Below are positions 665 to 57,153 of a stretch of DNA of 64,000 nucleotides, in pieces; the first letter of the stretch is position 1, and each line of letters begins with the position of its first letter. The DNA is taken from sequence record OR529409.1; one strand, written 5' to 3'. A program made the position numbers and the translations under genes. The notes under the pieces were generated by a model, which saw only the letters and a list, made by a program, of their open reading frames with translations, did no database searches and had not been told where the DNA came from.

Positions 665-2007
665 TACCCGTTAATATTAGTAACGTCTTAGAACAGGCGA
701 AGCAGGTTGCCGCAACCAAACGTGCTACCATCTCTACGCTCGAGCTAACTCTTATAACCCCGGAATTACATTATCCCGTTCCTAATGTTCAGAGGCTCTC
801 TAAGAGCTCTAATTTCTTGGAGGACGGGACGGATGTTTGGGCGATTAACTTCTTGATGCAGCCTGGCGTTTTCTTAAAACAGATTCTTCCGTACAAAGAT
901 AACCTGCTCGTTGACTTAGTTGAGAGCACGGGACTCAATAGAACACTTCGTCGCCTTCGCGCGACAATTCCAATGGACGTTAATCCTCAAACCAGTTCGG
1001 ATAACAGCGTCTATATTGATCCAGGCGTATTAGATCAAAACATGGTCGTTCCCGTCACACTTATCTTGATCGATACAGTATACGAACAGTTACGTAACCA
1101 ACCGCTACTTGATAATTACTTAATGGCTACAACCAAAGACGTTTTGCATAATGTCTGGAGTCAACAAGGTCACGCCATTCAGTCTAACGGTGTTAACAAG
1201 TTTAAGGGAGTTGACATTGAAGAACCCACCGATAACCCTAGAGTTTATCGGCAGATTATGGTCAAGCACGGTACACGTCTGACTCGTTTCGCGGACTATC
1301 TTCAGAATGAAGAAGGGCTGGGAATTTATACCCGTGGGTGTGGGTCTTTCTATCGAGATGGAATTTGGTACGTCTTTCCTATTTGTAAACCCGAAAGATA
1401 CGGTACGGTGAAGAAGTCCTTAGATATTTATAAGTTCCCTGAGGACGTTCTACCAGTAACGGAACAAACGTATGGGACGACGGCGAACTCCACGTTAATA
1501 CTTTCTACAGGCCCATCTAAATTGCTTGACGGGACTGATAACCTGAGACAGAATTTTGGTGCCGGTCAACAGATCATTTCTTCGGATGCGATTTCAGGAG
1601 AAGCTGGGTCACACTATAACAACGGAGCGAGTGTCACTCTACGAGCAGAGAAAGTCACTGAATACAGAACCACGCAGCGTGCTTCGGGGCAGGAACTTAT
1701 CGACATCAACCCCACTCCTACCAATAACGTTTTTAAAGAGATAACTAAAAACGCCATGAGGGACTGCAAGGTACTGGAATTGAATTGGAGTAACTCCAAT
1801 CCTTTTCTCATTACCCCAGGGGCGCCGGTTAAGTATTATTTCCTTAATGAACAAGGGACCCTCACCATCCAGGAAGGTACGGTAATATCGGAGCAGACCA
1901 CCTATTACTCTGATTCGACCAGACCCCTCACACCGTTTAGAAAGAACTCTGTTCTGACCATACTCCTGCTCCCTATTCAGAATAGCACGATAACCCCGAA
2001 CAATTAA
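661..2007 (+). CDS. Putative virion structural protein (baseplate-hub-like candidate)
   Basis: 448-aa ORF, translationally coupled to the upstream gene, beta-rich C-terminal half. Function inferred from context only. Confidence 0.45.
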   Translation: MIPVNISNVLEQAKQVAATKRATISTLELTLITPELHYPVPNVQRLSKSSNFLEDGTDVWAINFLMQPGVFLKQILPYKDNLLVDLVESTGLNRTLRRLRATIPMDVNPQTSSDNSVYIDPGVLDQNMVVPVTLILIDTVYEQLRNQPLLDNYLMATTKDVLHNVWSQQGHAIQSNGVNKFKGVDIEEPTDNPRVYRQIMVKHGTRLTRFADYLQNEEGLGIYTRGCGSFYRDGIWYVFPICKPERYGTVKKSLDIYKFPEDVLPVTEQTYGTTANSTLILSTGPSKLLDGTDNLRQNFGAGQQIISSDAISGEAGSHYNNGASVTLRAEKVTEYRTTQRASGQELIDINPTPTNNVFKEITKNAMRDCKVLELNWSNSNPFLITPGAPVKYYFLNEQGTLTIQEGTVISEQTTYYSDSTRPLTPFRKNSVLTILLLPIQNSTITPNN

Positions 2008-2094
2008 AATTTGACATGGAGTTTTTTATAACACTATATGACCACAGTGTATGAAAAACAAAATCTCATTTTTAATTGAATAGAGGAAATCATC

Positions 2095-4810: not shown

Positions 4811-6997
4811 ATGAAGCGTACAATTAACGTCCGCAAAGGCTCCACTGCTGTAAAACCCCTGAACCTCGCGATGAGCGACATGTTTAGTCAGGGCGGCTTT
4901 AAATCTTTTACTGGTGTTGAAAACCTGGATACTGCGACCGACCAGTTCAATGCCATGTTTGCTGGCACCGAGTCACTGGCTAACGGTATTAGCCCAGAGT
5001 CTTCCAAACTGCTCAGCAACCTGACCAACTCTCAGCGTTTCGCGACCATCTCCAGCATCGCGTCGATGCAAAATGCATTCCCGACCGTTGATCGTCGCCT
5101 GGCTGACTTCGCCGGTACCGAAGGTTTCTCAATGGCGCAGTTTGCCGGTGAGTCCGCTAAAGTTAAAGGCGTGAACATCACTCTGAACGCCCTGTCTCAC
5201 CGCCAGACCGACGCTGCTGAAGCTCTGTTCACCACCGTCACTATCCCGTACGCGGAAGAGTACCTGGAGTTCTCCGTGCGTACCGCCGGCCTGGGTCGTT
5301 ACATCTACGGTGCTGCTGCTGGCGAACGTGCCTCTGAGCTGGTACCGGTAATGAGCCTGATCCGCAAAGGTAAAGCTTTCATGGCTGATACCCTGCGCAT
5401 GTATCCGGTTTATCCGACCGACTCGGCTGATCCGAACCGTAAATACTTCATGGCTGAGTCTGTAGCTGCTGCTACCGAAGCCACTTACGACAGCGCTGAT
5501 CCGCTGAACCGTCAAGCTCACAAGACCCAATACCTGAAAGTTCCGGTATCCGTACCGAACCTGGTTGGTCTGTCTGAAGCCCCGGGTCAGAACCCGTTCG
5601 AAACTTCTGATGAAGTTGAATCCAACTCCATCCAGATGACCAACGTCGCACTGACCGCCAACGTCGGCGCTTCCGGCTCTGCTACCGCAGTCGTACTGCG
5701 TATGCCGACCGTGAACATGTCTCAGGCGCATTTCGGTATCGCTGCAATGGGTGCTTCTTCTGACGATCGTCAGATGGACTTCCAGGTACAGGGTCTGCCG
5801 GCGTCTGCACTGTTCAACATCGGTAGCGATACCGTTACCACCGCACTGGATGCACTGAAAGCGAATGGCGCTCAGCCGTTCTTCTCTCTGAGCATCACCG
5901 GTACTTACCAGCGTCAGACCAATACCCTGAAAATCCAGGGCGGTTCTTTCGAACTGGAGTACATCAAAGATGCGGCTGGCAACAAACATCTGCCGACCAC
6001 TTCCAGCGCAACGATCAAAGCTCTGTTCGGCCTGTTCGCTGATGGCGAAATCGCCGGTGTTGAACTGCGTTACAACCACACCAACATCAACCGCGTGAAC
6101 TTCGGTTACCGTGTTGAAGTGTTTGACGCACGTAAAACTCTGACCACTCATCGTCAGACTCCGATCTCTGTTCGCTACCCGGTCAGCAAAGAAGATACCA
6201 ATGAGGAATCTCTGAGCTACGCGATCGATCAGATGGCGATCATCCTGAACGCACAGACCACCGCAAACGCGTTTACCAAAGCTGAAGAGCACGTTGATTA
6301 CGTGACCTCCATCAACGGTTCCGCGATCGTAGGTAACGAACAGGCGTCTAACGTCCTGGCTGGTATGCACTACGCTAACGCTGCTGCGATCAACCGTACT
6401 CTGAAACTGTCTGACATCGTGTCTACTCAGGACAGCGTCGGTGTAGTTGACAACATCTCTGCGGCACTGTGCAACACCCTGAGCGAAATGGCAGCAGCGC
6501 TGGCCACTAACTCCGGTCTGGCTGCTATTGCCGAATACACCCGTGAAAAACTGAAATGGCAGGTTGTTGCCCATCAGAACATGGGTCGTTACCTGATGCG
6601 TTCTGGCGACGCTCGTACCATGGGTGCGTATACCGACTTCGCGGTTGAACTGACTAACGTCGAAACCATGATCGGTAAATTCTACCTGGTACCGCAGTCC
6701 GAAACCGACGGCAACACCATCGACCCGCTGGGTGGTATGGGCGTGTGCGTTGATAAAGAGCACGTTGTTGTACAGGGCGACGTCACTCGTACCGATCGTC
6801 AGTTCGGTATCCTGATGACCATGCCGATCTTCCAACACCACTCTGTATGTCCGATCGTCGGCGTACTGACCGTTGAAGACGCTGTACTGGCTCTGAACGA
6901 CGAAGGCCTGATCGACGCTCTGGCTAAACAGCGCGTTGTGGTTAACGGCGTTGTACAGTCTGAAGTCGACGCTGTAGACGACGGTCAGCTGCCGTAA
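4811..6997 (+). CDS. Major capsid protein (phiKZ gp120 / SPN3US gp75-like)
   Basis: 728 aa; extreme optimal-codon bias (CTG, CGT, GGT, ACC, ATC); N-terminal propeptide with S/A/G-x-E cleavage motifs (GVE, GTE, AGE); synteny helicase-x-MCP-x-RNAP. Confidence 0.9.
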   Translation: MKRTINVRKGSTAVKPLNLAMSDMFSQGGFKSFTGVENLDTATDQFNAMFAGTESLANGISPESSKLLSNLTNSQRFATISSIASMQNAFPTVDRRLADFAGTEGFSMAQFAGESAKVKGVNITLNALSHRQTDAAEALFTTVTIPYAEEYLEFSVRTAGLGRYIYGAAAGERASELVPVMSLIRKGKAFMADTLRMYPVYPTDSADPNRKYFMAESVAAATEATYDSADPLNRQAHKTQYLKVPVSVPNLVGLSEAPGQNPFETSDEVESNSIQMTNVALTANVGASGSATAVVLRMPTVNMSQAHFGIAAMGASSDDRQMDFQVQGLPASALFNIGSDTVTTALDALKANGAQPFFSLSITGTYQRQTNTLKIQGGSFELEYIKDAAGNKHLPTTSSATIKALFGLFADGEIAGVELRYNHTNINRVNFGYRVEVFDARKTLTTHRQTPISVRYPVSKEDTNEESLSYAIDQMAIILNAQTTANAFTKAEEHVDYVTSINGSAIVGNEQASNVLAGMHYANAAAINRTLKLSDIVSTQDSVGVVDNISAALCNTLSEMAAALATNSGLAAIAEYTREKLKWQVVAHQNMGRYLMRSGDARTMGAYTDFAVELTNVETMIGKFYLVPQSETDGNTIDPLGGMGVCVDKEHVVVQGDVTRTDRQFGILMTMPIFQHHSVCPIVGVLTVEDAVLALNDEGLIDALAKQRVVVNGVVQSEVDAVDDGQLP

Positions 6998-8210: not shown

Positions 8211-9881
8211 ATGGATCCTAAGTTACTGAAAGCGGTATCGGCTACGATGCCTAAGTTTAATGAAACGATAGCTTCAGGTTTCCATCAACGAGAATTTGAG
8301 CAAATACATAAACGTTATGAATATCTTTTAAGAATGACGTTTGAACCCATTGAAAAGAAAGGAGTATGGTTTGTTGGCGTCAGGTCGGTACGACCTCATG
8401 AAATGTATAACGTCATCGCGAAGAACACACAGCAGAAAACCTTTGAAACAAACAAAGAAAGTCTTTATCCGGTTAAACTCGTCTTTAAATACGGGATGGA
8501 TAAAAATACTGCCAGGGAGATGGATCCTGTTTACGTACTCCTTCCGTTCTGTGATCGGTATGGGGATGTTTGGATCAGGGGAAGTCAATACAGCTTACAG
8601 ATCGTCCTCGCTGACCGAGGATTGAGCGTCACCAAAGACGATCAGATCTTCGTAAGACTCCTGGGATATAAATTCAAAGTAGGGACTGAGCAATATGAGT
8701 ATACTCAGATCCACAATGAAATAAATCCTGTCAGGGAAACCAACCTTCCTATCAACCTTCCGGCTAACCGCTTCTACGTGGCCAGTGAAGCGCGTCGTCC
8801 AAACCCAACTAAAACACCCACACCTTTATTGGCGTGGTATGTGTTCGCGGAGTATGGTTTTAGCGAAACCATGCGTAAGTTTGGGGAATGCGATTATGCG
8901 ATAGGTGATCGTGATGCGATCATTCAGCAATATAGTGAAGATAAGGGTTGGAAGCTGTTTGGCAGTAAAGGATTGGCGATTGGTAAAAGTATCACACCAT
9001 ATGTGAATTGCGGGTTAGCTATAGCGGCTAAACCATTAAACGAAAAACGAAGAGGAGAAATACCTAACGTTGCACAACAGTATATTGCGGCATTGCTTTA
9101 TCTGTGTGATGTTGGCGGAGAATTTATTGATTTGGATAAACTCGACGATAAATATTTTTGGCGTATGATGGTCGGACACGCCAGTATTAAAGCCGGAGGA
9201 AATCTCACCCATTTGGAAAAACAGATGGCGGATCACTTCGATTCCATGAACGAAGGTTTAGACCAAACAAGTATCCAACGATTCGCTGAGCAACGAATTG
9301 TGGTTAAAGATCGTTATGAATTGTTTAATTACATCATAGCGAACCGGGCTGAAATCGTTAAGACTTCCGATAAAGCCAATATGTTACATAAAGAAATTAG
9401 TTCTAGTGAGTTCACATTAGACAAACTGATTACCGCGGCTAACCGCTTTAAACACGATGTCAAAAACACAACAGAACTCAACTATGAACGTGTTAAGTCA
9501 TTCATGTCATCTCATTTCAAATTACGCGATATCGAATCGGCTGCTTGGGAATCTAACATGATCCAAGAAGCTACGCCGACAGATTGCCCTATCGCCGATT
9601 ATGGCTTTGGGGTGATGTCTCAGGCGAAAGTATTCGGTCCTCGTAATAACGGGAGAAACAGTGACTTTAACCCTAACGATCCCGCTAACTGCATACATGG
9701 CTCTGTACCTTTTGTGATGAGTTTCCAACGGGTGACTAAACCCGACCCAAACGCTTGCGGATTCTTAGCCCCCTGCGTACATTTGATCAACGACAAATAT
9801 TTGGGACTCAGACCAGAAGATGTGGAACTGTACGAAGCCACTGTGAGCAGACTTACTAAGTCTGAGGTTAAAATTAAATGA
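8211..9881 (+). CDS. Non-virion RNA polymerase beta subunit fragment (phiKZ gp123 / SPN3US gp77-like)
   Basis: 556 aa; PFCDRYGDVWIRGSQY segment, C-terminal ERVTKPDP..GFLAPC-like segment; two genes downstream of MCP as in phiKZ-like phages. Confidence 0.75.
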   Translation: MDPKLLKAVSATMPKFNETIASGFHQREFEQIHKRYEYLLRMTFEPIEKKGVWFVGVRSVRPHEMYNVIAKNTQQKTFETNKESLYPVKLVFKYGMDKNTAREMDPVYVLLPFCDRYGDVWIRGSQYSLQIVLADRGLSVTKDDQIFVRLLGYKFKVGTEQYEYTQIHNEINPVRETNLPINLPANRFYVASEARRPNPTKTPTPLLAWYVFAEYGFSETMRKFGECDYAIGDRDAIIQQYSEDKGWKLFGSKGLAIGKSITPYVNCGLAIAAKPLNEKRRGEIPNVAQQYIAALLYLCDVGGEFIDLDKLDDKYFWRMMVGHASIKAGGNLTHLEKQMADHFDSMNEGLDQTSIQRFAEQRIVVKDRYELFNYIIANRAEIVKTSDKANMLHKEISSSEFTLDKLITAANRFKHDVKNTTELNYERVKSFMSSHFKLRDIESAAWESNMIQEATPTDCPIADYGFGVMSQAKVFGPRNNGRNSDFNPNDPANCIHGSVPFVMSFQRVTKPDPNACGFLAPCVHLINDKYLGLRPEDVELYEATVSRLTKSEVKIK

Positions 9882-12364: not shown

Positions 12365-13501
12365 ATGTTTATTTCTAAAAAGGGTAAACTCCGCCCGCAT
12401 AAAGATGATTTAGAAACAATCGAAAAAACCTTTGGTTGCCGGAGGTTTGTATGGAATCAGTTATTAGGATTACATAAAGAGCAATATGAAAAATGGGAAA
12501 AAGGAGAGGTATCTGAAAAACCTAAGATTTCTCTTTTACGGTTTCAGAATAAGTTAATGGAATTGAAATCGGCTAATCCTTGGTTATACGAAGTTTCTAA
12601 TGTTGTTTTACAACAGTCCTTCATTGACCTTTATAATGCCTTTCATAACTTCTTTAAAGGTTTGTCAGGTTACCCTAAATTTAAATCGAAAAGAGGAATC
12701 CAATCTTTTCGATTTTCAGGCAGCCGGGATATTCACGTCGATAATTTCAAATTAAGAATACCCAAATGTAAGAATAGGTCCTCTATTTCTAAAAACGTTA
12801 TACTCAACAACCCGTCTTCTTATACTGTTACTAAAGACCTCGTAGGAGATTATTTTATTTCCTTCGTAGACCAAATTGAAGAGATCGAACAAGAACCTGA
12901 GAGCATAGGAAAGTTCGTAGGAATCGATTTGGGTATTAAATCTTTAGCGGTTATTAAACATCTTAACGGTAACGTAGAGGAAATAGAAAATCCTAAATTT
13001 TATCGTAAAGCTGAAAAACGTTTAAAAATGCTACAACGCCGTTTAAGTAAGAAACAGAAAGGGAGTAATAACCGAAATAAAGCTAGAATTAAATTAGCGA
13101 AATACTGCCGTAAAGTCGCGAATCAACGTAATGACTTTTTACATAAATTATCCACTCGATTAATTACCGAAAACCAAGGGATTAATATCGAGGATTTAAA
13201 TGTAAAAGGTATGATCAAAAACCATAACTTAGCAAAGTCGATTCAAGATGCATCTTTTGGTATGTTCAGGAACATGTTAGAATATAAAGCTAATCGTTAC
13301 ACTGTACCAAAAATCATCGGTGTTGTAAACAGGCTCTATCCCAGCACGCAGATTTGTTCTCATTGTAACACCAAAAGTGAAGTGAAAATCAAACTTCATA
13401 TCCGAGAATGGACTTGTGGTCACTGCGGAACTCATCACGATCGTGACATCAATGCTGCTACGAATATCCTTAACCAAGGATTACGTTTAACAACCTCCTA
13501 G
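12365..13501 (+). CDS. tnpB: RNA-guided endonuclease TnpB (IS200/IS605 OrfB)
   Basis: HTH FGCRRFVWN; RuvC-I GIDLGIK; RuvC-II IEDLNV; Zn ribbon CSHC/CGHC; RuvC-III HDRDINAATNI; visibly more AT-rich than its flanks. Confidence 0.95.
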   Translation: MFISKKGKLRPHKDDLETIEKTFGCRRFVWNQLLGLHKEQYEKWEKGEVSEKPKISLLRFQNKLMELKSANPWLYEVSNVVLQQSFIDLYNAFHNFFKGLSGYPKFKSKRGIQSFRFSGSRDIHVDNFKLRIPKCKNRSSISKNVILNNPSSYTVTKDLVGDYFISFVDQIEEIEQEPESIGKFVGIDLGIKSLAVIKHLNGNVEEIENPKFYRKAEKRLKMLQRRLSKKQKGSNNRNKARIKLAKYCRKVANQRNDFLHKLSTRLITENQGINIEDLNVKGMIKNHNLAKSIQDASFGMFRNMLEYKANRYTVPKIIGVVNRLYPSTQICSHCNTKSEVKIKLHIREWTCGHCGTHHDRDINAATNILNQGLRLTTS

Positions 13502-13686: not shown

Positions 13687-14322
13687 ATGAATCGTCCAAT
13701 TTTTAAAATTAGTCAGCACGCGCAGTTGTCGATCCCGGCCCTCATCGATGTTACAGAAAATGAAGCGGAATGCTCGTCACTTGTTTACGGCCTCCATCCT
13801 TCCATGACCGGGGTATTCTCTGAACGCCAGAAGGATTCAATGGCAGAGAGTCTTTACCTAATGGGTCAGTACGCCGAAATCATTCCCAGGAATAAGCCGG
13901 AGTGTACGATTGATTATCATCCCATCACTAACGAGCATTACCTTAAATCGTTTAAACATTATTACGAAGCATGGGTTGCTTTGGGTAGAGATGAAGTGGT
14001 GATGCAGGGAGCTACTGTTAGGGTTTCGTCGTTTTTATTATTAAGGACTATGTTCAATGGGGTCATAGGAATTCTACCTTATCTCGACCCCAAAGGACAT
14101 CGGATGCAAGCAAAGGAATACGCTAAATTAGACGATTTGGTTAAACTGACCTACGGCGTGCCCGCTGGGTCATTCTCGGCGACCCCCGATTACCAGGTTG
14201 TTCCTAAAATAGAGGTGCGGGAACAGATCGTGATGAGCTTCACTGACAAATACGGTAATGTCATCACCATCACTGGAATCGATAGAGAAAAGATGATCGA
14301 ACAGATAGAAAAATTAAAGTAA
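13687..14322 (+). CDS. Hypothetical protein
   Basis: 211 aa; RBS AAGGA; followed by a terminator. Confidence 0.7.
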   Translation: MNRPIFKISQHAQLSIPALIDVTENEAECSSLVYGLHPSMTGVFSERQKDSMAESLYLMGQYAEIIPRNKPECTIDYHPITNEHYLKSFKHYYEAWVALGRDEVVMQGATVRVSSFLLLRTMFNGVIGILPYLDPKGHRMQAKEYAKLDDLVKLTYGVPAGSFSATPDYQVVPKIEVREQIVMSFTDKYGNVITITGIDREKMIEQIEKLK

Positions 14323-14328
14323 TCGTCT

Positions 14329-14360
14329 TCCCTACCACTCCTTAACTGGAGTGGTAGGGA
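14329..14360 (+). terminator. Intrinsic terminator
   Basis: TCCCTACCACTCC-TTAACT-GGAGTGGTAGGGA. Confidence 0.8.
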
Positions 14361-14401
14361 GTAAGAAAGCTTTAATTTTTTAACATGAAGATTTTTATAA
14401 G

Positions 14402-14420
14402 TCGATATCATTCAGGTGTA
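14402..14420 (+). promoter_or_regulatory. Putative early promoter TCGATATCATTCAGGTGTA
   Basis: 16/19 identical to TCGATATTATTTATGTGTA at 56890; both follow a terminator and T-tract and precede an RBS. Confidence 0.55.
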
Positions 14421-14464
14421 TAAACAACAAGTATTTTAATTCTTATTCACTAAAGAGGTCCAAA

Positions 14465-15037
14465 ATGGAAATTCGTAAAGATATGATCAATGAAATCGCC
14501 GCTCGTATCATCTCTGGTTGCAACGACGTGGAAGCCAGTGTCCGCGAAAAGCTGCTGCGTAATTTGGTTAATGGTGAGATCTGGCAGTTCGAGCTCAATG
14601 AAACTGAGCAAGCGGAACTGATCGCGATCGTAAGCAAAGAGTTCGGTATTTCCGATCTGGTCTACGTCGAACCGCAGAAAAACATTTCTGAAGAAGATGT
14701 CGCCAAAGTCGCTGCCAGTGTTAACGGGCATGTCGAACACAAATATCTGAATCTGCGAAATGCGATGGCGGTCGGCGCAGTACTCGGTGCCGGTGCGGCC
14801 ATCTTAAAAGAAGGTGCGAACGCAATTAATGCCGGTGCTGGTGTGGTCGGCGCTGCTGTTTCTTACGGCGTGGGTTATCTGGCTGACAAGAAACATATCG
14901 GTATGGGTAATCAGTACGCTGATGTCGCGGCAGGTATTGTTGCCGGTGGTGTTATCGGTGGCGGCGCTGTATTTGGCGCGGGCTTCGTCACCAAACGTTT
15001 CTTCAGCAATGAAGAAGTTGAAGTTGTTGCAGAGTAA
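14465..15037 (+). CDS. Glycine-zipper membrane protein A
   Basis: RBS GAGG; optimal codons; C-terminal GxxxG-rich helices (GAVLGAGA, GVVGAAVSYGVGYLAD, GIVAGGVIGGG). Confidence 0.8.
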   Translation: MEIRKDMINEIAARIISGCNDVEASVREKLLRNLVNGEIWQFELNETEQAELIAIVSKEFGISDLVYVEPQKNISEEDVAKVAASVNGHVEHKYLNLRNAMAVGAVLGAGAAILKEGANAINAGAGVVGAAVSYGVGYLADKKHIGMGNQYADVAAGIVAGGVIGGGAVFGAGFVTKRFFSNEEVEVVAE

Positions 15038-15100
15038 TAAACGCATCTGAAATATCCGATGCATCTTAAATTAAACTATCAATAGTAAGGAAATACGATC

Positions 15101-15493
15101 ATGAAAAAAGAAAACACTGAACTGACTGGTGCTGAACTCGACGAAGCTAAAGCAATGCTGGCTGTTGATGCAGAAACTTCTCTGTTCGACGATATCTGTG
15201 AAAAACTCGGTGGCTACGTAGCTACCGACAAACAGAAAAGCCACGTGAAAGCCGCAGTGATCGGTGGTGTTATCGGCACCGCTCTGAGCATGGCGAGCAA
15301 ACCATCTGTCGGCACGCTGATCGGTGGCGTGGTTGGTACCGCAGGCGGCGCTTATGTGGGTAGCCGTATCGCTGATGATCTGAGCAATCAGTTCATTGAC
15401 AAACTGCTCACCGCTGACATTGGCTTCCTGTGCAGCACCATCGGGGCGTCCATCGGTAGTGCATTAACCCCGAGTAAAGTCGAAGCGAACTAA
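15101..15493 (+). CDS. Glycine-zipper membrane protein B
   Basis: RBS AAGGA; GGVIGTA, KPSVGTLIGGVVGTAGGAYVGSRIAD. Confidence 0.8.
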   Translation: MKKENTELTGAELDEAKAMLAVDAETSLFDDICEKLGGYVATDKQKSHVKAAVIGGVIGTALSMASKPSVGTLIGGVVGTAGGAYVGSRIADDLSNQFIDKLLTADIGFLCSTIGASIGSALTPSKVEAN

Positions 15494-15561
15494 ATCTTCT
15501 AGTTCGTTTAAACACTGTTAAATTTTAGGCAACTCAACATCAAAACGTAAGAGGTATTATC

Positions 15562-15957
15562 ATGGATATGGCAAACAAACCTGCAGTTAACAACATCACT
15601 GTGTCAGAAGAAGAAATTCTGAAAAAGCTGGCCGGTCACAAATCCACCGATGTCAACTATCGGGTCGGTCGAATCGCTGGTGTGATGGGCGCAGTCGTCG
15701 GTGGTGCACATCGCACTATCACTCAAGGTATTAAACCGTCAACTGTCGTCGGCGCGGTAGTCGGCGGTTTAGTTGGATACAAAACTGGTAAGCTCGCGGA
15801 TAGCTTCAGCGGCCTGACGGGAACGCATTCCCCGATCGCAGATGTCGGCGCATTCACAGCAGGTTACGGTGTAACTCTGGGCATGAGCGCCCTGGCAGCC
15901 ACCTTCGATCAGTACATCACTCCGCTGTACGAATCAGAAGAAGAAACCGAAGAATAA
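15562..15957 (+). CDS. Glycine-zipper membrane protein C
   Basis: RBS GAGGT; GVMGAVVGG, KPSTVVGAVVGGLVGYKTGKLAD; acidic tail. Confidence 0.8.
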   Translation: MDMANKPAVNNITVSEEEILKKLAGHKSTDVNYRVGRIAGVMGAVVGGAHRTITQGIKPSTVVGAVVGGLVGYKTGKLADSFSGLTGTHSPIADVGAFTAGYGVTLGMSALAATFDQYITPLYESEEETEE

Positions 15958-15963
15958 GAAAGT

Positions 15964-15995
15964 TAACTCCTCTACCCTTACGGGTAGAGGAGTTA
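15964..15995. terminator. Bidirectional terminator
   Basis: TAACTCCTCTACCC-TTAC-GGGTAGAGGAGTTA between convergent genes. Confidence 0.85.
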
Positions 15996-16015
15996 CTTAA
16001 TTACTTATTTTTTTT

Positions 16016-18985
16016 TTATTCCGGGATGGAATCGTCAACTTGGAAGTCGTCTTTCTTATCGCCGTCTTCTTCTGTCTTTGTTTCTTCCTCAGTTTGGTTT
16101 TCTTCTTCTTCGGAAGTGTCTGTTCCCGTCTCTTCTTCCTCAGTCGTTCCCCCTTCCCCAGGCAAATCTTCCTCTATAGAGAAATCGTCGTCTGTCTGAG
16201 TTCCCTCTTCAGGGTTACCCTCATCAGCAGGTGGGGCGCCGAACTCATCCGCCGGAGGCTGTTCCGCAGGCATGATCTTTTCCAAACGTTTAGTCAGTCG
16301 ATCAGTCTCTTTATTCCAGGCCTTCATGAACTGTTCTAAGAACATTCCACTGTTGTCCACGTACTGAGATATGTTGTGGATTAACGAATAGACCCCGCCC
16401 TCTTTACCCTTGTTACCGATAAGATCGAACGGCATAGGGAGGTTGAATCGATCATAAAGTTCAATTAGATAAGTACTGCGAATAATGGATTTGACTTTCT
16501 CAATATCCAACCCGCCGCTACCATCAGTTTTGTTCATGATCTGTTCAATCAGACCGGAAGTCCCTGACATTTCAACCCACGAGTTTACAAACTGATTGAC
16601 CGTATCGATTTTATCTTTCAGTTTGGTTACTGATTCCTGAGTAGCCGGAGTCGGTAAGGTCACGGTGAGGTTGTTGATAAAGTCAGCCAGGATAACTTCA
16701 ACGATGTGCTCGTTAGTCCCCTCTATCTCTTCGCCGTTATCAGGTTTCCACAACGATTTGTTCTCGTTAATAGTGTCGACTAAACGATTCAACATAACCT
16801 GGTTAACCAACATATCCTTACGTTCGATCTCGGCAACAAAGTCACCCAATACCTTCTGCCAGATCAATGTTTGGTTGCGGAGCATTTCCTGCTCGGCCAA
16901 TGCTTCGACCTGGAAGTTGGTTCCTTCTTCTTTATCGTCCAACCAAGTACGTTGGAGTTTAAAAGTGGAGGCGATGTTGTTGAGGAGGTTCTGTCTGGAG
17001 GTTTCGTCGATAGCTTTGAAGTTACCGCGTTCAACCGGTTCCAAAGTTATCTTGGGTCCGACCATCCACGGGTTACCGTTACTATTAACCTCAACGATCA
17101 GGGATTGAGTCTTCATTGCTTCAACAATGTCGGGTACTGAAACAGTACCAGAGTTTACCACGTTGTGAAGCGTTGGGTTTACCCTGAAGAACTGCGCCCT
17201 GGCCGTAGCAATCGTACCATCCGGATCAACGTCGTCTTCTTCCAGATCAACCACTAAACGCTGACGGGTTTGAGCCTGATCCAAGTTAGCCAGAATGTCA
17301 GCAGTATCCAATGCTGCCAGACGACCGATATGGAGTTTAGCCTGGTTGGTTAAAGAAGAACCAATACCAAAGCTATTGTAGTCAAACGCGACGTAGGTGA
17401 AGTACTCTGCCGGAATGTAAAGAACCCGAACACCCTGTTGCTTGAAAGAACGAGCCAGGAAGATCTTCAGGTTAGCTTCAACCAATTCAACAGAAATATT
17501 TTTCCCACTCACCCCGGAAGCAATAGCCTGGATAAGGGATTTTTCTATTTGATCCTTCGATAACAGGGTGAATTCTGACATATCGAAGTCACAATCGGCA
17601 CCTTGCTGAACTTTCTTCAGGTTAGCGATAAGTGCGTTGGTTCCACCTGTTTTATTAGGTGTGTCGATCTTATCTTTCTGACCCTTAGTGGACTGATAGA
17701 AGTTAAAGTCTCTTGTGCTTTTTAAGAACTCACCGTTGGATGGATCAAGCAAGGCGAACCCACCAATGAGCTTAGTTCTATCGCCTTCCATATGGACGGG
17801 AATAAAAGCTTCACTCGGAATATGATACCGTAACGGAATTCCATAAACTGAGGTGTCGTAAACCCCTGGGCTACGAACACTGATGGTTTGACGATGCGGG
17901 TAACTGCGGTGTGGATAAAACTCATTCTGAAGAACTTCCAGTTGGCTTTCCGGCAAGATCTGAGTTTTAGTATCGGCATTAGGCGTCCCGTTCTTACGTT
18001 TGGCCTTAGTGTCGTCAGGTTCTTTATTCGACTTCTTAGGATCTTCCTTTTTCTTATCCTTGGTCGCCGTAGTCTCTTCTTCGCCTTCCTCACCTTTTTT
18101 CTCTAGACGAGATTTAATAAGGGAAGCGAGATCTTCTGTCCCGCCGATGTCGTTAACGATCTTCTTCGTTAAAACCTGATTCACGGAACGAAGAGCCAGA
18201 ACCGCCGGGTTGTCTGTCAAGGTAATCCCGAACCCTTCGCCTTCATCATTCTCGATCAATTCGAATTCAGTTGAGGCGTCTGGGGTGGAGTGGCTAAACA
18301 AAGCCTCTAGCCCGTGAACGACGTTATTGAGCTGCTTAGGGCCCCTCACCAATCCTTTGTTGATGGCGAGAAACTTACCGTCCACATTTTTAAATTGCTT
18401 CTCAATCTCTGGTTTTATCTGAGTGTTAATGTAACTTTCGTTACCCGTCACTCCGTCTTCACCAAACTGCTGACCGTTGATAAGGTGATCCAGCGCAGGT
18501 CTAGAGATGTTCAAAAGCACGTAGGACCCTGTACCGAACAACCCATCTTTGATGAACTCCGGTAATAGCTTCTCGATTTTATAGTCGCTGGTATAGTAGG
18601 TTTCCGTCTTACGGAGCAACTCTTCATGCAGCTTAGTATTTTTAAATTGAGACCGCAAAGTATCGTGAGTAAGGATCCTTTCCTGTAATCCGTTCGGGTA
18701 GAGGAGAAGCGTCTTCCAGATTAATTCCGCGCGCGAAACATAAGGTGTGATTTCCCTTAAGTCAGTTGCCGCATTGATATTGCTGGCAATGATATCGCTG
18801 ATCTTTTTTAATTTGGAAGGCTGGACTTTACGTTCTTTCTCATCCGTATTTCTGGTATGATCTCTCTCGTCCCGAACGAGGTTCCGAACGACGCTTTTTA
18901 ACGAGGGGCTGATATTGTTTAAATTACCCCTGAGTTTGGTTTGATCGAGGTAATCATATCCTCGGGTTGAACGCGTTCTATTCAT
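16016..18985 (-). CDS. Portal protein (phiKZ gp129 / SPN3US gp81-like)
   Basis: 989 aa, helical, acidic disordered C-tail, head-protease-type motifs (GNES, GLEA); reverse orientation, divergent from the gp128-like gene as in phiKZ-like synteny. Confidence 0.7.
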   Translation of the reverse strand: MNRTRSTRGYDYLDQTKLRGNLNNISPSLKSVVRNLVRDERDHTRNTDEKERKVQPSKLKKISDIIASNINAATDLREITPYVSRAELIWKTLLLYPNGLQERILTHDTLRSQFKNTKLHEELLRKTETYYTSDYKIEKLLPEFIKDGLFGTGSYVLLNISRPALDHLINGQQFGEDGVTGNESYINTQIKPEIEKQFKNVDGKFLAINKGLVRGPKQLNNVVHGLEALFSHSTPDASTEFELIENDEGEGFGITLTDNPAVLALRSVNQVLTKKIVNDIGGTEDLASLIKSRLEKKGEEGEEETTATKDKKKEDPKKSNKEPDDTKAKRKNGTPNADTKTQILPESQLEVLQNEFYPHRSYPHRQTISVRSPGVYDTSVYGIPLRYHIPSEAFIPVHMEGDRTKLIGGFALLDPSNGEFLKSTRDFNFYQSTKGQKDKIDTPNKTGGTNALIANLKKVQQGADCDFDMSEFTLLSKDQIEKSLIQAIASGVSGKNISVELVEANLKIFLARSFKQQGVRVLYIPAEYFTYVAFDYNSFGIGSSLTNQAKLHIGRLAALDTADILANLDQAQTRQRLVVDLEEDDVDPDGTIATARAQFFRVNPTLHNVVNSGTVSVPDIVEAMKTQSLIVEVNSNGNPWMVGPKITLEPVERGNFKAIDETSRQNLLNNIASTFKLQRTWLDDKEEGTNFQVEALAEQEMLRNQTLIWQKVLGDFVAEIERKDMLVNQVMLNRLVDTINENKSLWKPDNGEEIEGTNEHIVEVILADFINNLTVTLPTPATQESVTKLKDKIDTVNQFVNSWVEMSGTSGLIEQIMNKTDGSGGLDIEKVKSIIRSTYLIELYDRFNLPMPFDLIGNKGKEGGVYSLIHNISQYVDNSGMFLEQFMKAWNKETDRLTKRLEKIMPAEQPPADEFGAPPADEGNPEEGTQTDDDFSIEEDLPGEGGTTEEEETGTDTSEEEENQTEEETKTEEDGDKKDDFQVDDSIPE

Positions 18986-43770: not shown

Positions 43771-44439
43771 ATGAAGACCGCATTTGGTTTAATGTTCATT
43801 CTTATCATGGGGATAAGTAGCGCATTCGCATCAGTGAGTACATCTCAGTCGGATTACCACTATTTTAATAAGCAGAAAACTTATATTTTCGAAGCATCCA
43901 AACTTACAGGGATCTCCCCTGAATTAGTTACCGCAATAGGTTCCATTGAAAGTGGCCTGGGGCGCAATAAAGTTAATCGGTATTCTAAAGTCAAAGGTGT
44001 GATGCAAACCACCAAGCGGACTTATAACTCTAACCTCAAGAAACATCACGAAAGACTTGGGTTATCTCCTAACGCTTCTATCAAAAACGATAGAGCAAAT
44101 ATCCTAGTTGCTACCGCAGCATTAGCAGATAACAAACGTTACTTAGAGAAAGTCACGAATAAAAAAATCACAGATGGGGATGTGTTCATTTCCCATCTGG
44201 TAGGTTTAGGTGGCGCAGCTAAAATAATCAAAGGTAAACCTAACGCCCCTATAAGCCGTTATATCACGCTTCATAAAGGGAACATGCGACTCTATACTGA
44301 CAAAGGACGGGTATTGACTGTGGCGCAGTTTAGGAGGAGTATGGATCGGTTGGTAAAGAGAGAAAGCGCGAAGTATGCCGTGGTTATCAATCAGAACAAG
44401 TTGGATCGTTTGATAACAGCTGTCGCGTATAATCAATAA
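43771..44439 (+). CDS. Lytic transglycosylase (phiKZ gp144-type SLT domain) with a Sec signal peptide
   Basis: SIESG (catalytic Glu), GVMQ, DGDVFISHLVGLGGAAK, matching my recollection of the gp144 catalytic domain; N-terminus MKTAFGLMFILIMGISSAFA. Confidence 0.85.
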   Translation: MKTAFGLMFILIMGISSAFASVSTSQSDYHYFNKQKTYIFEASKLTGISPELVTAIGSIESGLGRNKVNRYSKVKGVMQTTKRTYNSNLKKHHERLGLSPNASIKNDRANILVATAALADNKRYLEKVTNKKITDGDVFISHLVGLGGAAKIIKGKPNAPISRYITLHKGNMRLYTDKGRVLTVAQFRRSMDRLVKRESAKYAVVINQNKLDRLITAVAYNQ

Positions 44440-56824: not shown

Positions 56825-56943
56825 CTTAGATTTTAACCAGGAGAGGCTTACGCCTCTCCTGGTTTATTTTACTTGTATTCTTTTTTGGATCGATATTATT
56901 TATGTGTAAACCTCAATAACTTTTAGGAATCAACATCATGAAT
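56825..56943 (+). repeat. Terminator-promoter-RBS cassette, copy 1
   Basis: CTTAGATTTTAA, hairpin AACCAGGAGAGGC-TTAC-GCCTCTCCTGGTT, TATTTTACTTGTATTCTTTTT, then TTTAGGA...CATCATGAAT. Confidence 0.85.
56890..56908 (+). promoter_or_regulatory. Putative early promoter TCGATATTATTTATGTGTA
   Basis: 16/19 match to 14402-14420. Confidence 0.55.
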
Positions 56944-57153
56944 GGTCTTTTTGGAACAGGTTGTTTGCTGTTAGGTGCTGCAGTGTATTTCTTCCTGAAG
57001 TACCTAGAACTACGTAAAGATTTTAAAGAGAATAAGATTAAAGATAAGGGCCGGGCGTCTGGGTATAAAAATACCTATTTCTCTTTAACCATTTGTGTTT
57101 TGGGTCTGGGCGTCTTTTTAATGGTTAATGGAACTTTGTTGGAGATCAGATAA
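56938..57153 (+). CDS. Small two-TM membrane protein
   Basis: 71 aa; two hydrophobic segments around a basic loop. Confidence 0.65.
   Translation: MNGLFGTGCLLLGAAVYFFLKYLELRKDFKENKIKDKGRASGYKNTYFSLTICVLGLGVFLMVNGTLLEIR

Follow-up and report, generated by a model that had tools for sequence, protein, structure and literature searches.

Three paralogous genes for glycine-zipper-type proteins behind a probable early promoter in a Miamivirus-like jumbo phage

Three tandem plus-strand open reading frames (ORFs), designated here A, B, and C, lie between a promoter and a terminator in a 64,000-nt stretch of sequence record OR529409.1 (the whole of this stretch is referred to below as the window). 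Gene A (14465-15037) encodes 190 aa, gene B (15101-15493) 130 aa, and gene C (15562-15957) 131 aa. Each has its own Shine-Dalgarno site: AAAGAGG for gene A (14452-14458, 6 nt ahead of the ATG), AAGGA for gene B (15087-15091, 9 nt ahead), and TAAGAGG for gene C (15548-15554, 7 nt ahead). The plus-strand hairpin terminator of the preceding gene (13687-14322), at 14330-14359, marks the start of an independent transcription unit. At the other end, a bidirectional terminator (15964-16018) serves both the operon and a convergent portal gene, and consists of a hairpin with a 14-bp stem at 15964-15995 followed by a T-run at about 16008-16018. No convincing terminator was found between the three genes, and two weak terminator-like matches within gene A are of the kind expected by chance (4 observed, 2.3 expected). 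The genes are labeled as encoding hypothetical proteins in all seven Miamivirus records; pairwise dN/dS values among four Miamiviruses are 0.04-0.10 for A, 0.07-0.24 for B, and 0.07-0.15 for C, so that these are real coding genes. A preliminary description of this DNA had proposed three tandem genes with individual ribosome-binding sites, a single terminator, and one operon of three paralogues; all of these hold.

Positions 14300-16100 of the window match Stenotrophomonas phage BUCTxx100 (OR529409.1, 252 kb) at 100% identity and with unchanged coordinates, and are 93-97% identical to the corresponding regions of Klebsiella phages Miami, KPN8, YC1, and phiKp_32 and of Raoultella phage VB_ZK_P1. 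Miami is classified as a Miamivirus, and serves as a distant relative of Erwinia phage RAY in a study of chimallin-encoding phages (PMC10299810). The BUCTxx100 genome includes a chimallin/PhuN homologue (record positions 202037-204049; match to PDB 8fne, E = 1.4e-4) and a phiKZ gp123-type non-virion RNA polymerase subunit (8211-9881; PDB 7ogp_E, E = 4e-10), and also encodes PhuZ, a GroEL-like gene, and two further RNA polymerase beta subunits. Judged by these genes, the source phage is a Miamivirus-type chimallivirus, that is, a nucleus-forming jumbo phage; the chimallin/PhuN, PhuZ, and gp123 homologues confirm its earlier designation as a chimallivirus. The record lists Stenotrophomonas maltophilia as the host, while the genome is 93-97% identical to Klebsiella and Raoultella Miamiviruses, has a G+C content of 44%, and in its most biased genes uses enterobacterial optimal codons; the listed host merits checking.

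The promoter of the operon (14369-14430, plus strand), recognized by a position weight matrix (PWM) scan and by conservation, has ATATCATT at 14405-14412 as its extended -10-like core, preceded by a T-rich part and followed by GGTGTATAAAC at 14415-14425. Transcription probably starts within GGTGTATAAAC, near 14415-14425, which would give a leader of about 45 nt. The matrix was derived from 16 seed sites, and the whole BUCTxx100 genome, taken in pieces, was scanned with it. In the core of these sites, position 1 is A in 14 of 16; positions 2, 3, 4, and 6 are T, A, T, and A in all 16; position 5 is T in 13 and C in 3; position 7 is T in 10 and C in 6; and position 8 is C in 9 and T in 7. About 26 sites were found, all of them on the plus strand, all intergenic, and all 23-250 nt ahead of a gene; the operon promoter, at 40.6 bits, ranks third among them. 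When held out and scored with a matrix made from 14 other sites (its closest look-alikes being left out as well), it still scores 29.4 bits, compared to maxima of 7.7-15.9 bits in ten shuffled 64-kb windows.

Members of the same promoter family precede the genes for chimallin (42.2 bits), PhuZ, and the GroEL-like protein, the operon with the gp123-like subunit, and the two RNA polymerase beta subunits followed by a UvsW-like helicase; none was found by the whole-genome scan ahead of the capsid, portal, or tail sheath genes. Among the Klebsiella Miamiviruses, the 93 nt ahead of gene A do not vary (100% identity), though the coding regions differ; in the Raoultella phage they are 94.6% identical. 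The promoter is also nearly unchanged in a metagenomic lineage (contig L018, described below) where identity in proteins A, B, and C is down to 36-45%, and Vibrio phages retain about 75% identity to it over roughly 70 nt. The layout of hairpin, promoter, and gene recurs ahead of the analogues in phages VP4B and Joad, and every family member examined has this promoter type directly upstream.

The early promoter of phiKZ, which occurs at PHIKZ054, combines an extended -10 box with T-rich sequence upstream of -19 and gives 5′ untranslated regions of 31-40 nt (PMC8244752). For RNA polymerase-encoding jumbo phages in general, the only conserved motif that bioinformatic searches pick up is that of the early promoter; middle and late promoters are missed (PMC7598289). 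From this analogy to phiKZ, and from the other genes under the same promoter family, we infer that the virion RNA polymerase transcribes A-B-C as an early unit. A putative early promoter had been placed at 14402; the motif is real, with its core at 14405-14412, and its early class is very probable.

Two other candidates were rejected. A sigma-70 reading (TTAACA, 18-nt spacing, GATATC) received no support from a simple scan, and the motif family fits a phage-specific early type. Intergenic T-rich 8-mers proposed as a promoter motif turned out to be terminator tails; a whole-genome search for enriched 9-mers did not reveal the promoter. The terminator hairpins of this genome reuse a few stem sequences, those with GTAGGAGT / ACTCCTAC recurring 9-11 times in intergenic DNA, and the T-run that follows each recurring hairpin accounts for the apparent intergenic T-rich "motif."

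Several of the other promoter sites stand ahead of genes of an envelope type. A near-duplicate of the extended promoter and leader is found at window positions 2005-2060 (plus strand), ahead of the gene (2095-2553) for a 152-aa protein that has a clear signal peptide and matches no family. Other close copies occur at record positions 207131-207186, ahead of a 41-aa membrane peptide (207214-207339), and at about 183000, ahead of a 71-aa protein. Elsewhere, the first gene behind this promoter type encodes a signal-peptide protein with an SLT lytic transglycosylase domain (43771-44439, plus strand), a 71-aa product with two hydrophobic helices (56938-57153, plus strand; this ORF falls in a gap of our own ORF set), a second signal-peptide protein (record positions 88473-88889), or a LysM-like protein (124423-124968). 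With several first genes of this kind, there appears to be an early envelope-directed gene set, and the phage would be investing early in the envelope.

Codon usage points to strong expression. Codon adaptation index (CAI) values were computed against the top genes of the phage itself, normalized per amino acid, and ranked for 256 genes. Genes B, A, and C rank 4, 9, and 13 (z = 3.4, 2.6, and 2.2); at the top of the list are the genes for the capsid protein, chimallin, and an internal head protein, with the tail sheath at rank 8, while the genes flanking the operon rank 72-195. Expression of A-B-C is accordingly predicted to be very high, among the strongest early units of the phage. The preliminary description was right to set the codon bias of the trio apart from that of its neighbors, and overstated it in equating it with that of the capsid gene: CAI values for the three are 0.56-0.67, compared to 0.77 for capsid.

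The three proteins have one architecture: a charged leader (99, 50, and 37 residues in A, B, and C), three uncharged segments rich in glycine and alanine, and an acidic tail. The putative helices are at aa 100-114, 123-140, and 154-176 in A (nt 14762-14992) and at aa 51-66, 69-88, and 107-123 in B (helical core, nt 15251-15469), while the apolar cores of C are at aa 38-49, 60-73, and 95-115 (nt 15673-15906). No signal peptide, hydrophobic signal, or lipobox was found at the N-termini. B and C have a KPS turn, which in B separates helices 1 and 2, and all three have the pattern x-[LI]-A-D after helix 2 (GYLAD, SRIAD, and GKLAD). A-D-[VI] stands ahead of helix 3 in all three proteins of the window, but is not conserved among orthologues of A; the leader, the KPS turn (B and C), x-[LI]-A-D, A-D-[VI], and the acidic tail, all listed originally as shared features, are thus seen in the window proteins. 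In block-shuffled local alignments, A and C are similar at z = 5.5 and B and C at z = 6.6, with none of 500 shuffles reaching the observed score.

Helix 2 of B has glycines at 71, 75, 79, 83, and 87, and glycine periodicity from i to i+4 exceeds that expected from composition in B (15-40 of 2000 segment shuffles) and in C (22-78 of 2000). Invariant glycines are present in every helix across 13 sequences. The arrangement of two adjacent helices with glycines at i, i+4, and i+8 and a short turn between them is thus found here, in the glycines of B and the KPS turns of B and C, and the description of these helices as of glycine-zipper type is borne out for B and C by periodicity beyond composition, as it is not for A. 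The same arrangement characterizes the bacterial glycine zipper 2TM domains (PF05433 Rick_17kDa_Anti/SlyB, PF13441, PF13488; YiaD, YfgH), which like B and C have two short helices, glycines at every fourth residue, and a tight turn. To these the trio adds the long charged leader, a third helix, and the acidic tail, and differs in being phage-encoded, in three paralogues, behind an early-type promoter. Compared to the SlyB, YiaD, and YfgH lipoproteins, all scores are below cut-offs and the proteins lack a lipoprotein signal peptide, which closes the usual route to the outer membrane.

The longest uncharged stretches in A, B, and C are 23, 20, and 21 residues, and the maximum Kyte-Doolittle values are 1.3-1.8. 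Helix 1 is preceded, and helix 2 followed, by basic residues, and the C-termini are acidic, a charge pattern that for membrane-spanning helices would suggest an N-in, C-out orientation. A re-entrant or peripheral hairpin is just as compatible with the sequences as full spans. An AlphaFold2 model of C, made with an 11-sequence family alignment, is an antiparallel three-helix bundle (helices 35-55, 59-86, and 91-124) with a mean predicted local distance difference test score (pLDDT) of 71.6, core blocks mostly at 74-90 with one at 68, and a predicted template modeling score of 0.60. Among predicted viral structures, its best Foldseek matches after the Miami orthologue are small proteins of phages EL, RisingSun, PS1, Vibrio phage 2 TSL-2019, pEt-SU, and VP4B, with probabilities of 0.99-1.00 for those of EL, RisingSun, and PS1. 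The best of these outside Miamivirus is the 118-aa EL protein Q2Z0Z9 (BFVD; E = 3.6e-3, probability 1.00). Holin-type models (LydA-type and others) come next, at E values of 0.4-2 and probabilities of up to 0.96, and are not significant.

By sequence, the family can be followed a limited distance. A tblastn search of 50,697 phage records and a word search of 5.8 billion proteins gave only Miamivirus-level relatives, tblastn with the VP4B and Joad analogues gave no matches across genera, and two IMG/VR scans with proteins P0012 and P0008 were likewise negative. A profile of the three paralogues had 11 matches at E <= 0.001 among 1.84 billion representative proteins, a number small enough to show that it is specific. 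The new matches sort cleanly into A, B, or C groups, with the exception of one generic 56-aa bacterial glycine-zipper protein. Against Pfam, PHROGs, and NCBIfam, the matches of A, B, and C were all either below threshold or uninformative, and a sequence search of the PDB with the family profile gave nothing below E = 1.

Through the profile matches, the A-B-C trio extends beyond Miamivirus to two more distant metagenomic lineages. Contig L018 has gp039, gp040, A, B, C, and the convergent portal gene in the same order as the window, with the terminator hairpin and T-run also kept; identities to the window are 45% for A (P0012), 36% for B, 40% for C, and 76.5% for the portal. Contigs L019 and L020 have a fragment of A followed by B and C, again in that order. 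The ordered trio and the clean orthologue groups in L018 and L019 imply that the triplication is old and that each copy has been kept. At a shorter distance, gene C of phiKp_32 has a synonymous divergence of 0.6-0.8 from the other Miamiviruses, compared to 0.05-0.17 for gene A of the same genomes, which points to local recombination or mosaicism inside the operon.

Six other chimallivirus lineages, of which five are named phages and the sixth is a metagenomic jumbo phage, have one or two copies, again preceded by this promoter type. Analogues with the architecture of the trio and the promoter type directly upstream, adjacent to the portal gene, are RisingSun/Joad gp87, pEt-SU gp070, a 232-aa Sureiya protein, and ZPAH34 gp097, each in one copy, and the pair AGB07264/AGB07265 in VP4B; EL Q2Z0Z9 and A0A514TUN5 of PS1 are likened to the trio by architecture and Foldseek. 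These differ from the trio in being present in one or two copies rather than three, and are too diverged for linkage by BLAST or hidden Markov models. Shuffle tests support B against VP4B at z = 5.4 and A against Sureiya at z = 4.2. Position, promoter, architecture, these moderate shuffle statistics, and fold-search probabilities together suggest that the single-copy analogues are homologous. An uncultured jumbo phage (ENA GROS21 contigs of 91 and 237 kb) has a lone A-like gene directly behind the promoter type (L022, positions 5001-5849). Its neighbors on L022 and L023 are genes for DHFR, the anti-CBASS protein Acb1, an AcrVA2-like protein, and an acetyltransferase, with a PnuC-type transporter in L023; in the 237-kb phage, the next gene after it encodes a signal-peptide protein.

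Across six named phage genera and two metagenomic lineages, the location is the same: the genes are flanked on one side by the capsid-gene block and on the other by the portal gene, with which they converge. The portal gene of the window (16016-18985, minus strand; 989 aa), which is outside the operon, encodes a phiKZ portal homologue, with matches in 280 jumbo-phage records, part of which annotate it as portal. The lone A-like gene of the 237-kb phage indicates that linkage to the portal is not obligatory. At the loci examined, the copy number was three, two, one, or zero, depending on the lineage. The statement that no equivalent had been described in jumbo phages is correct for the literature, where no paper joining "glycine zipper" and "jumbo phage" was found, but not for the genomes, since relatives without annotation exist in eight or more additional lineages of chimalliviruses.

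A TnpB/IS605 OrfB gene (window positions 12365-13501, plus strand) with Pfam OrfB_IS605 (1e-31), Cas12f1-like TNB (6e-20), and helix-turn-helix domains separates the gp039 and gp040 homologues, roughly 1 kb upstream of the operon. Klebsiella phage Miami has no gene at this site, and the BUCTxx100 copy looks like a recent insertion of a mobile element into a jumbo phage. Outside the window, at record positions of about 190.7-191.1 kb, there is an extremely AT-rich tract of reiterated short repeats with no annotated gene, which may be a replication origin or a genome-end region.

As an interpretation of the operon, we tentatively prefer one whose probability we would put a little short of even: that A, B, and C are early, abundant, membrane-associated, hetero-oligomerizing glycine-zipper paralogues of a phage-specific family. 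The injected virion RNA polymerase would read the three genes from a near-optimal early promoter, and translation would be very high. The products, as anciently diverged paralogues, would each have a cytoplasmic leader, a helical hairpin of the "2TM glycine zipper" kind, a third Gly/Ala-rich helix, and an acidic tail. By attachment or insertion, they would associate with a host-derived membrane at its cytoplasmic face, this membrane being the inner membrane or possibly that of the early-infection (EPI) vesicle; as there is no signal peptide, insertion would be signal-independent. Small-residue faces would then pack the three into an abundant hetero-oligomeric assembly, with a stoichiometric, non-lethal effect on the envelope, for example blocking the entry of a second phage, or sealing or stabilizing the membrane after entry. 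Such a change is more likely than a lytic pore, since proteins that are abundant from the outset of a long infection are less likely to make up a depolarizing pore or holin than to have a stoichiometric, non-lethal role.

There are precedents for parts of this scheme. The T4 Imm and Sp proteins are small, early, abundant membrane proteins that act in superinfection exclusion at the envelope of the infected cell; the trio would resemble them in way of working, no sequence or fold relation having been found. Glycine-zipper helices are the membrane-active or self-assembling part of the two-protein Caulobacter CdzC/CdzD system (PMC5380434) and of the type VI and type VII secretion effectors Tse4, Tde1, TelE, and EsxX (PMC10240207, PMC10434224, PMC12744356), as is proposed here for the trio. 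None of CdzC, CdzD, Tse4, or similar proteins was among the matches of searches with the A, B, and C proteins and profile. Unlike these toxins, the trio has no secretion domain or immunity gene, and its neighbors are core phage genes; very high early expression in the phage's own host also argues against a depolarizing toxin. What is already known, then, is the glycine-zipper hairpin as a building block and early phage envelope proteins as a theme; what is new is this family, which has no curated family or description.

Several observations weigh against membrane-associated, hetero-oligomeric zippers. None of A, B, or C reaches the Pfam gathering scores for glycine zippers (PF13441, PF13488, PF05433): B has 23.3 bits for Gly-zipper_YMGG (cut-off 28.9), 21.9 for Gly-zipper_Omp (cut-off 25), and 15.8 against a cut-off of 24.2; C has 16.2 against 24.2 and 14.0 against 25; and A has no Pfam glycine-zipper match. 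NCBIfam scores are likewise below cut-offs (e.g., 19.6 against 175 for YiaD_Gzip_OmpA). The sub-threshold Pfam and NCBIfam matches do cover helices 1 and 2 of B and C, and only 2-3 of 13 family members have a Pfam glycine-zipper match at E <= 0.01. The glycine periodicity of A is explained by its composition in the shuffle test, and direct similarity between A and B is not significant in block shuffles (z = 0.6). The proteins are net acidic (charges of -9, -5, and -4 for A, B, and C). Their apolar segments are 12-23 residues long, with only 12 and 14 in helices 1 and 2 of C, and the best 19-mers have summed Hessa-type free energies of +3.0, +5.6, and +3.7 kcal/mol in A, B, and C; segments this short and marginally hydrophobic are not assured of being canonical membrane-spanning helices, and a soluble form is possible. 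The AlphaFold2 model of B, from a shallow alignment (helices 43-65, 68-93, and 99-122), has a pLDDT of 47.7 and is unusable, and the model of C had no Foldseek match in the PDB below E = 1. The one basis for proposing a hetero-oligomer is the co-retention of the three paralogues. Finally, there is no family gene at the syntenic site in the phiKZ-like phage PA7, Goslar, Special G, or EL, although the fold search suggests a relative elsewhere in the EL genome.

The marginal hydrophobicity, short apolar stretches, net acidity, and lack of a signal peptide would fit proteins that remain in the cytoplasm, as abundant early three-helix bundles whose glycine faces serve for tight packing or self-assembly, perhaps as accessories of the chimallin shell or of some other early assembly. 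AlphaFold2 folds C by itself as a closed three-helix bundle, the top PDB fold matches (none significant) include designed soluble helical repeats and three-helix bundles, and the expression level and promoter class are those of chimallin. One argument against a soluble role is that the helices have stretches of 12-23 positions almost free of polar residues, with charges on either side, which is the pattern of glycine-zipper 2TM domains; another is that the only family-level sequence matches are to membrane glycine-zipper families, and the viral fold neighbors outside the family are holin-type. On balance we consider soluble bundles unlikely.

The setting of the A-like gene in L022 and L023, an accessory block with Acb1 and an AcrVA2-like gene, raises a further possibility, that these are membrane proteins for counter-defense or host takeover, neutralizing an abortive-infection effector or modulating ion flux or respiration. 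The coding sequences also evolve fast (36-45% identity, compared to 76.5% for the portal), the distribution is patchy, and there is local mosaicism in gene C. For an inhibitor with a single target, however, expression this high and the retention of three paralogues would be unusual, and the Pfam, PHROG, and NCBIfam scans, of which PADLOC was not a part, named no defense or anti-defense family. A function of this kind seems to us rather improbable.

Position suggests something else again: between the capsid block and the portal in most lineages found, with codon adaptation like that of major virion proteins, the genes might encode head or ejection proteins that are packaged next to the portal and form a channel through the inner membrane or the wall of the EPI vesicle, whose channels are still unidentified (PMC12908238). 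PHROG gave weak matches to the glycine-rich segments of tape-measure proteins. Yet the promoter class is that of chimallin, PhuZ, and the non-virion RNA polymerase genes rather than capsid or portal, the A-like gene of L022/L023 is far from any head gene, and no match to the phiKZ inner-body family (PF12699) was found with Pfam or PHROGs. RisingSun gp87 was not among the proteins identified by mass spectrometry of a lysate, in a survey that also missed the portal and is therefore uninformative on this point (PMC6034870). We regard packaging in the virion as improbable.

A holin-type lysis system, or a holin with antiholins, making holes in the inner membrane at the end of infection, is the least probable alternative and a very improbable one: the proteins are small with two to three glycine-rich helices, the phage 21 pinholin is lined by glycine zippers, and we know of no experimentally defined chimallivirus holin, but the resemblance to LydA-type and class I to III holins in fold is weak and not significant, the early promoter, very high predicted expression, long cytoplasmic leaders, and acidic rather than basic C-termini all differ, the annotated endolysin (record positions 151007-157813) is more than 135 kb away, and many chimalliviruses lyse their hosts without having the family.

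For the preferred reading, an early membrane-associated assembly of the three paralogues, the most specific setting would be the EPI vesicle. In phiKZ, specific early proteins associate with this vesicle (bioRxiv 10.1101/2024.03.24.586471), and its maturation and the hand-over to the protein nucleus are unexplained (PMC12908238). By analogy, a link of A-B-C to the early-infection vesicle is possible. A stronger form, in which the A-B-C assembly sits in the EPI-vesicle membrane or at the entry site and controls permeability or opening when the genome is handed over to the nascent nucleus in this clade, we consider a long shot. The absence of the family from syntenic sites makes a universal EPI-vesicle function unlikely, and the patchy distribution suggests an accessory, possibly competitive function (exclusion or envelope protection) over a core step; the trio would then be an accessory of one phage clade, and not a universal part of the life cycle.

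If the EPI-vesicle assembly were nevertheless real, it would be a phage-made membrane machine for a step without known components. Apart from that, the trio provides concrete and cheaply checkable candidates for early membrane proteins, and the promoter family to which it belongs provides a defined early promoter set for the Miamivirus clade.

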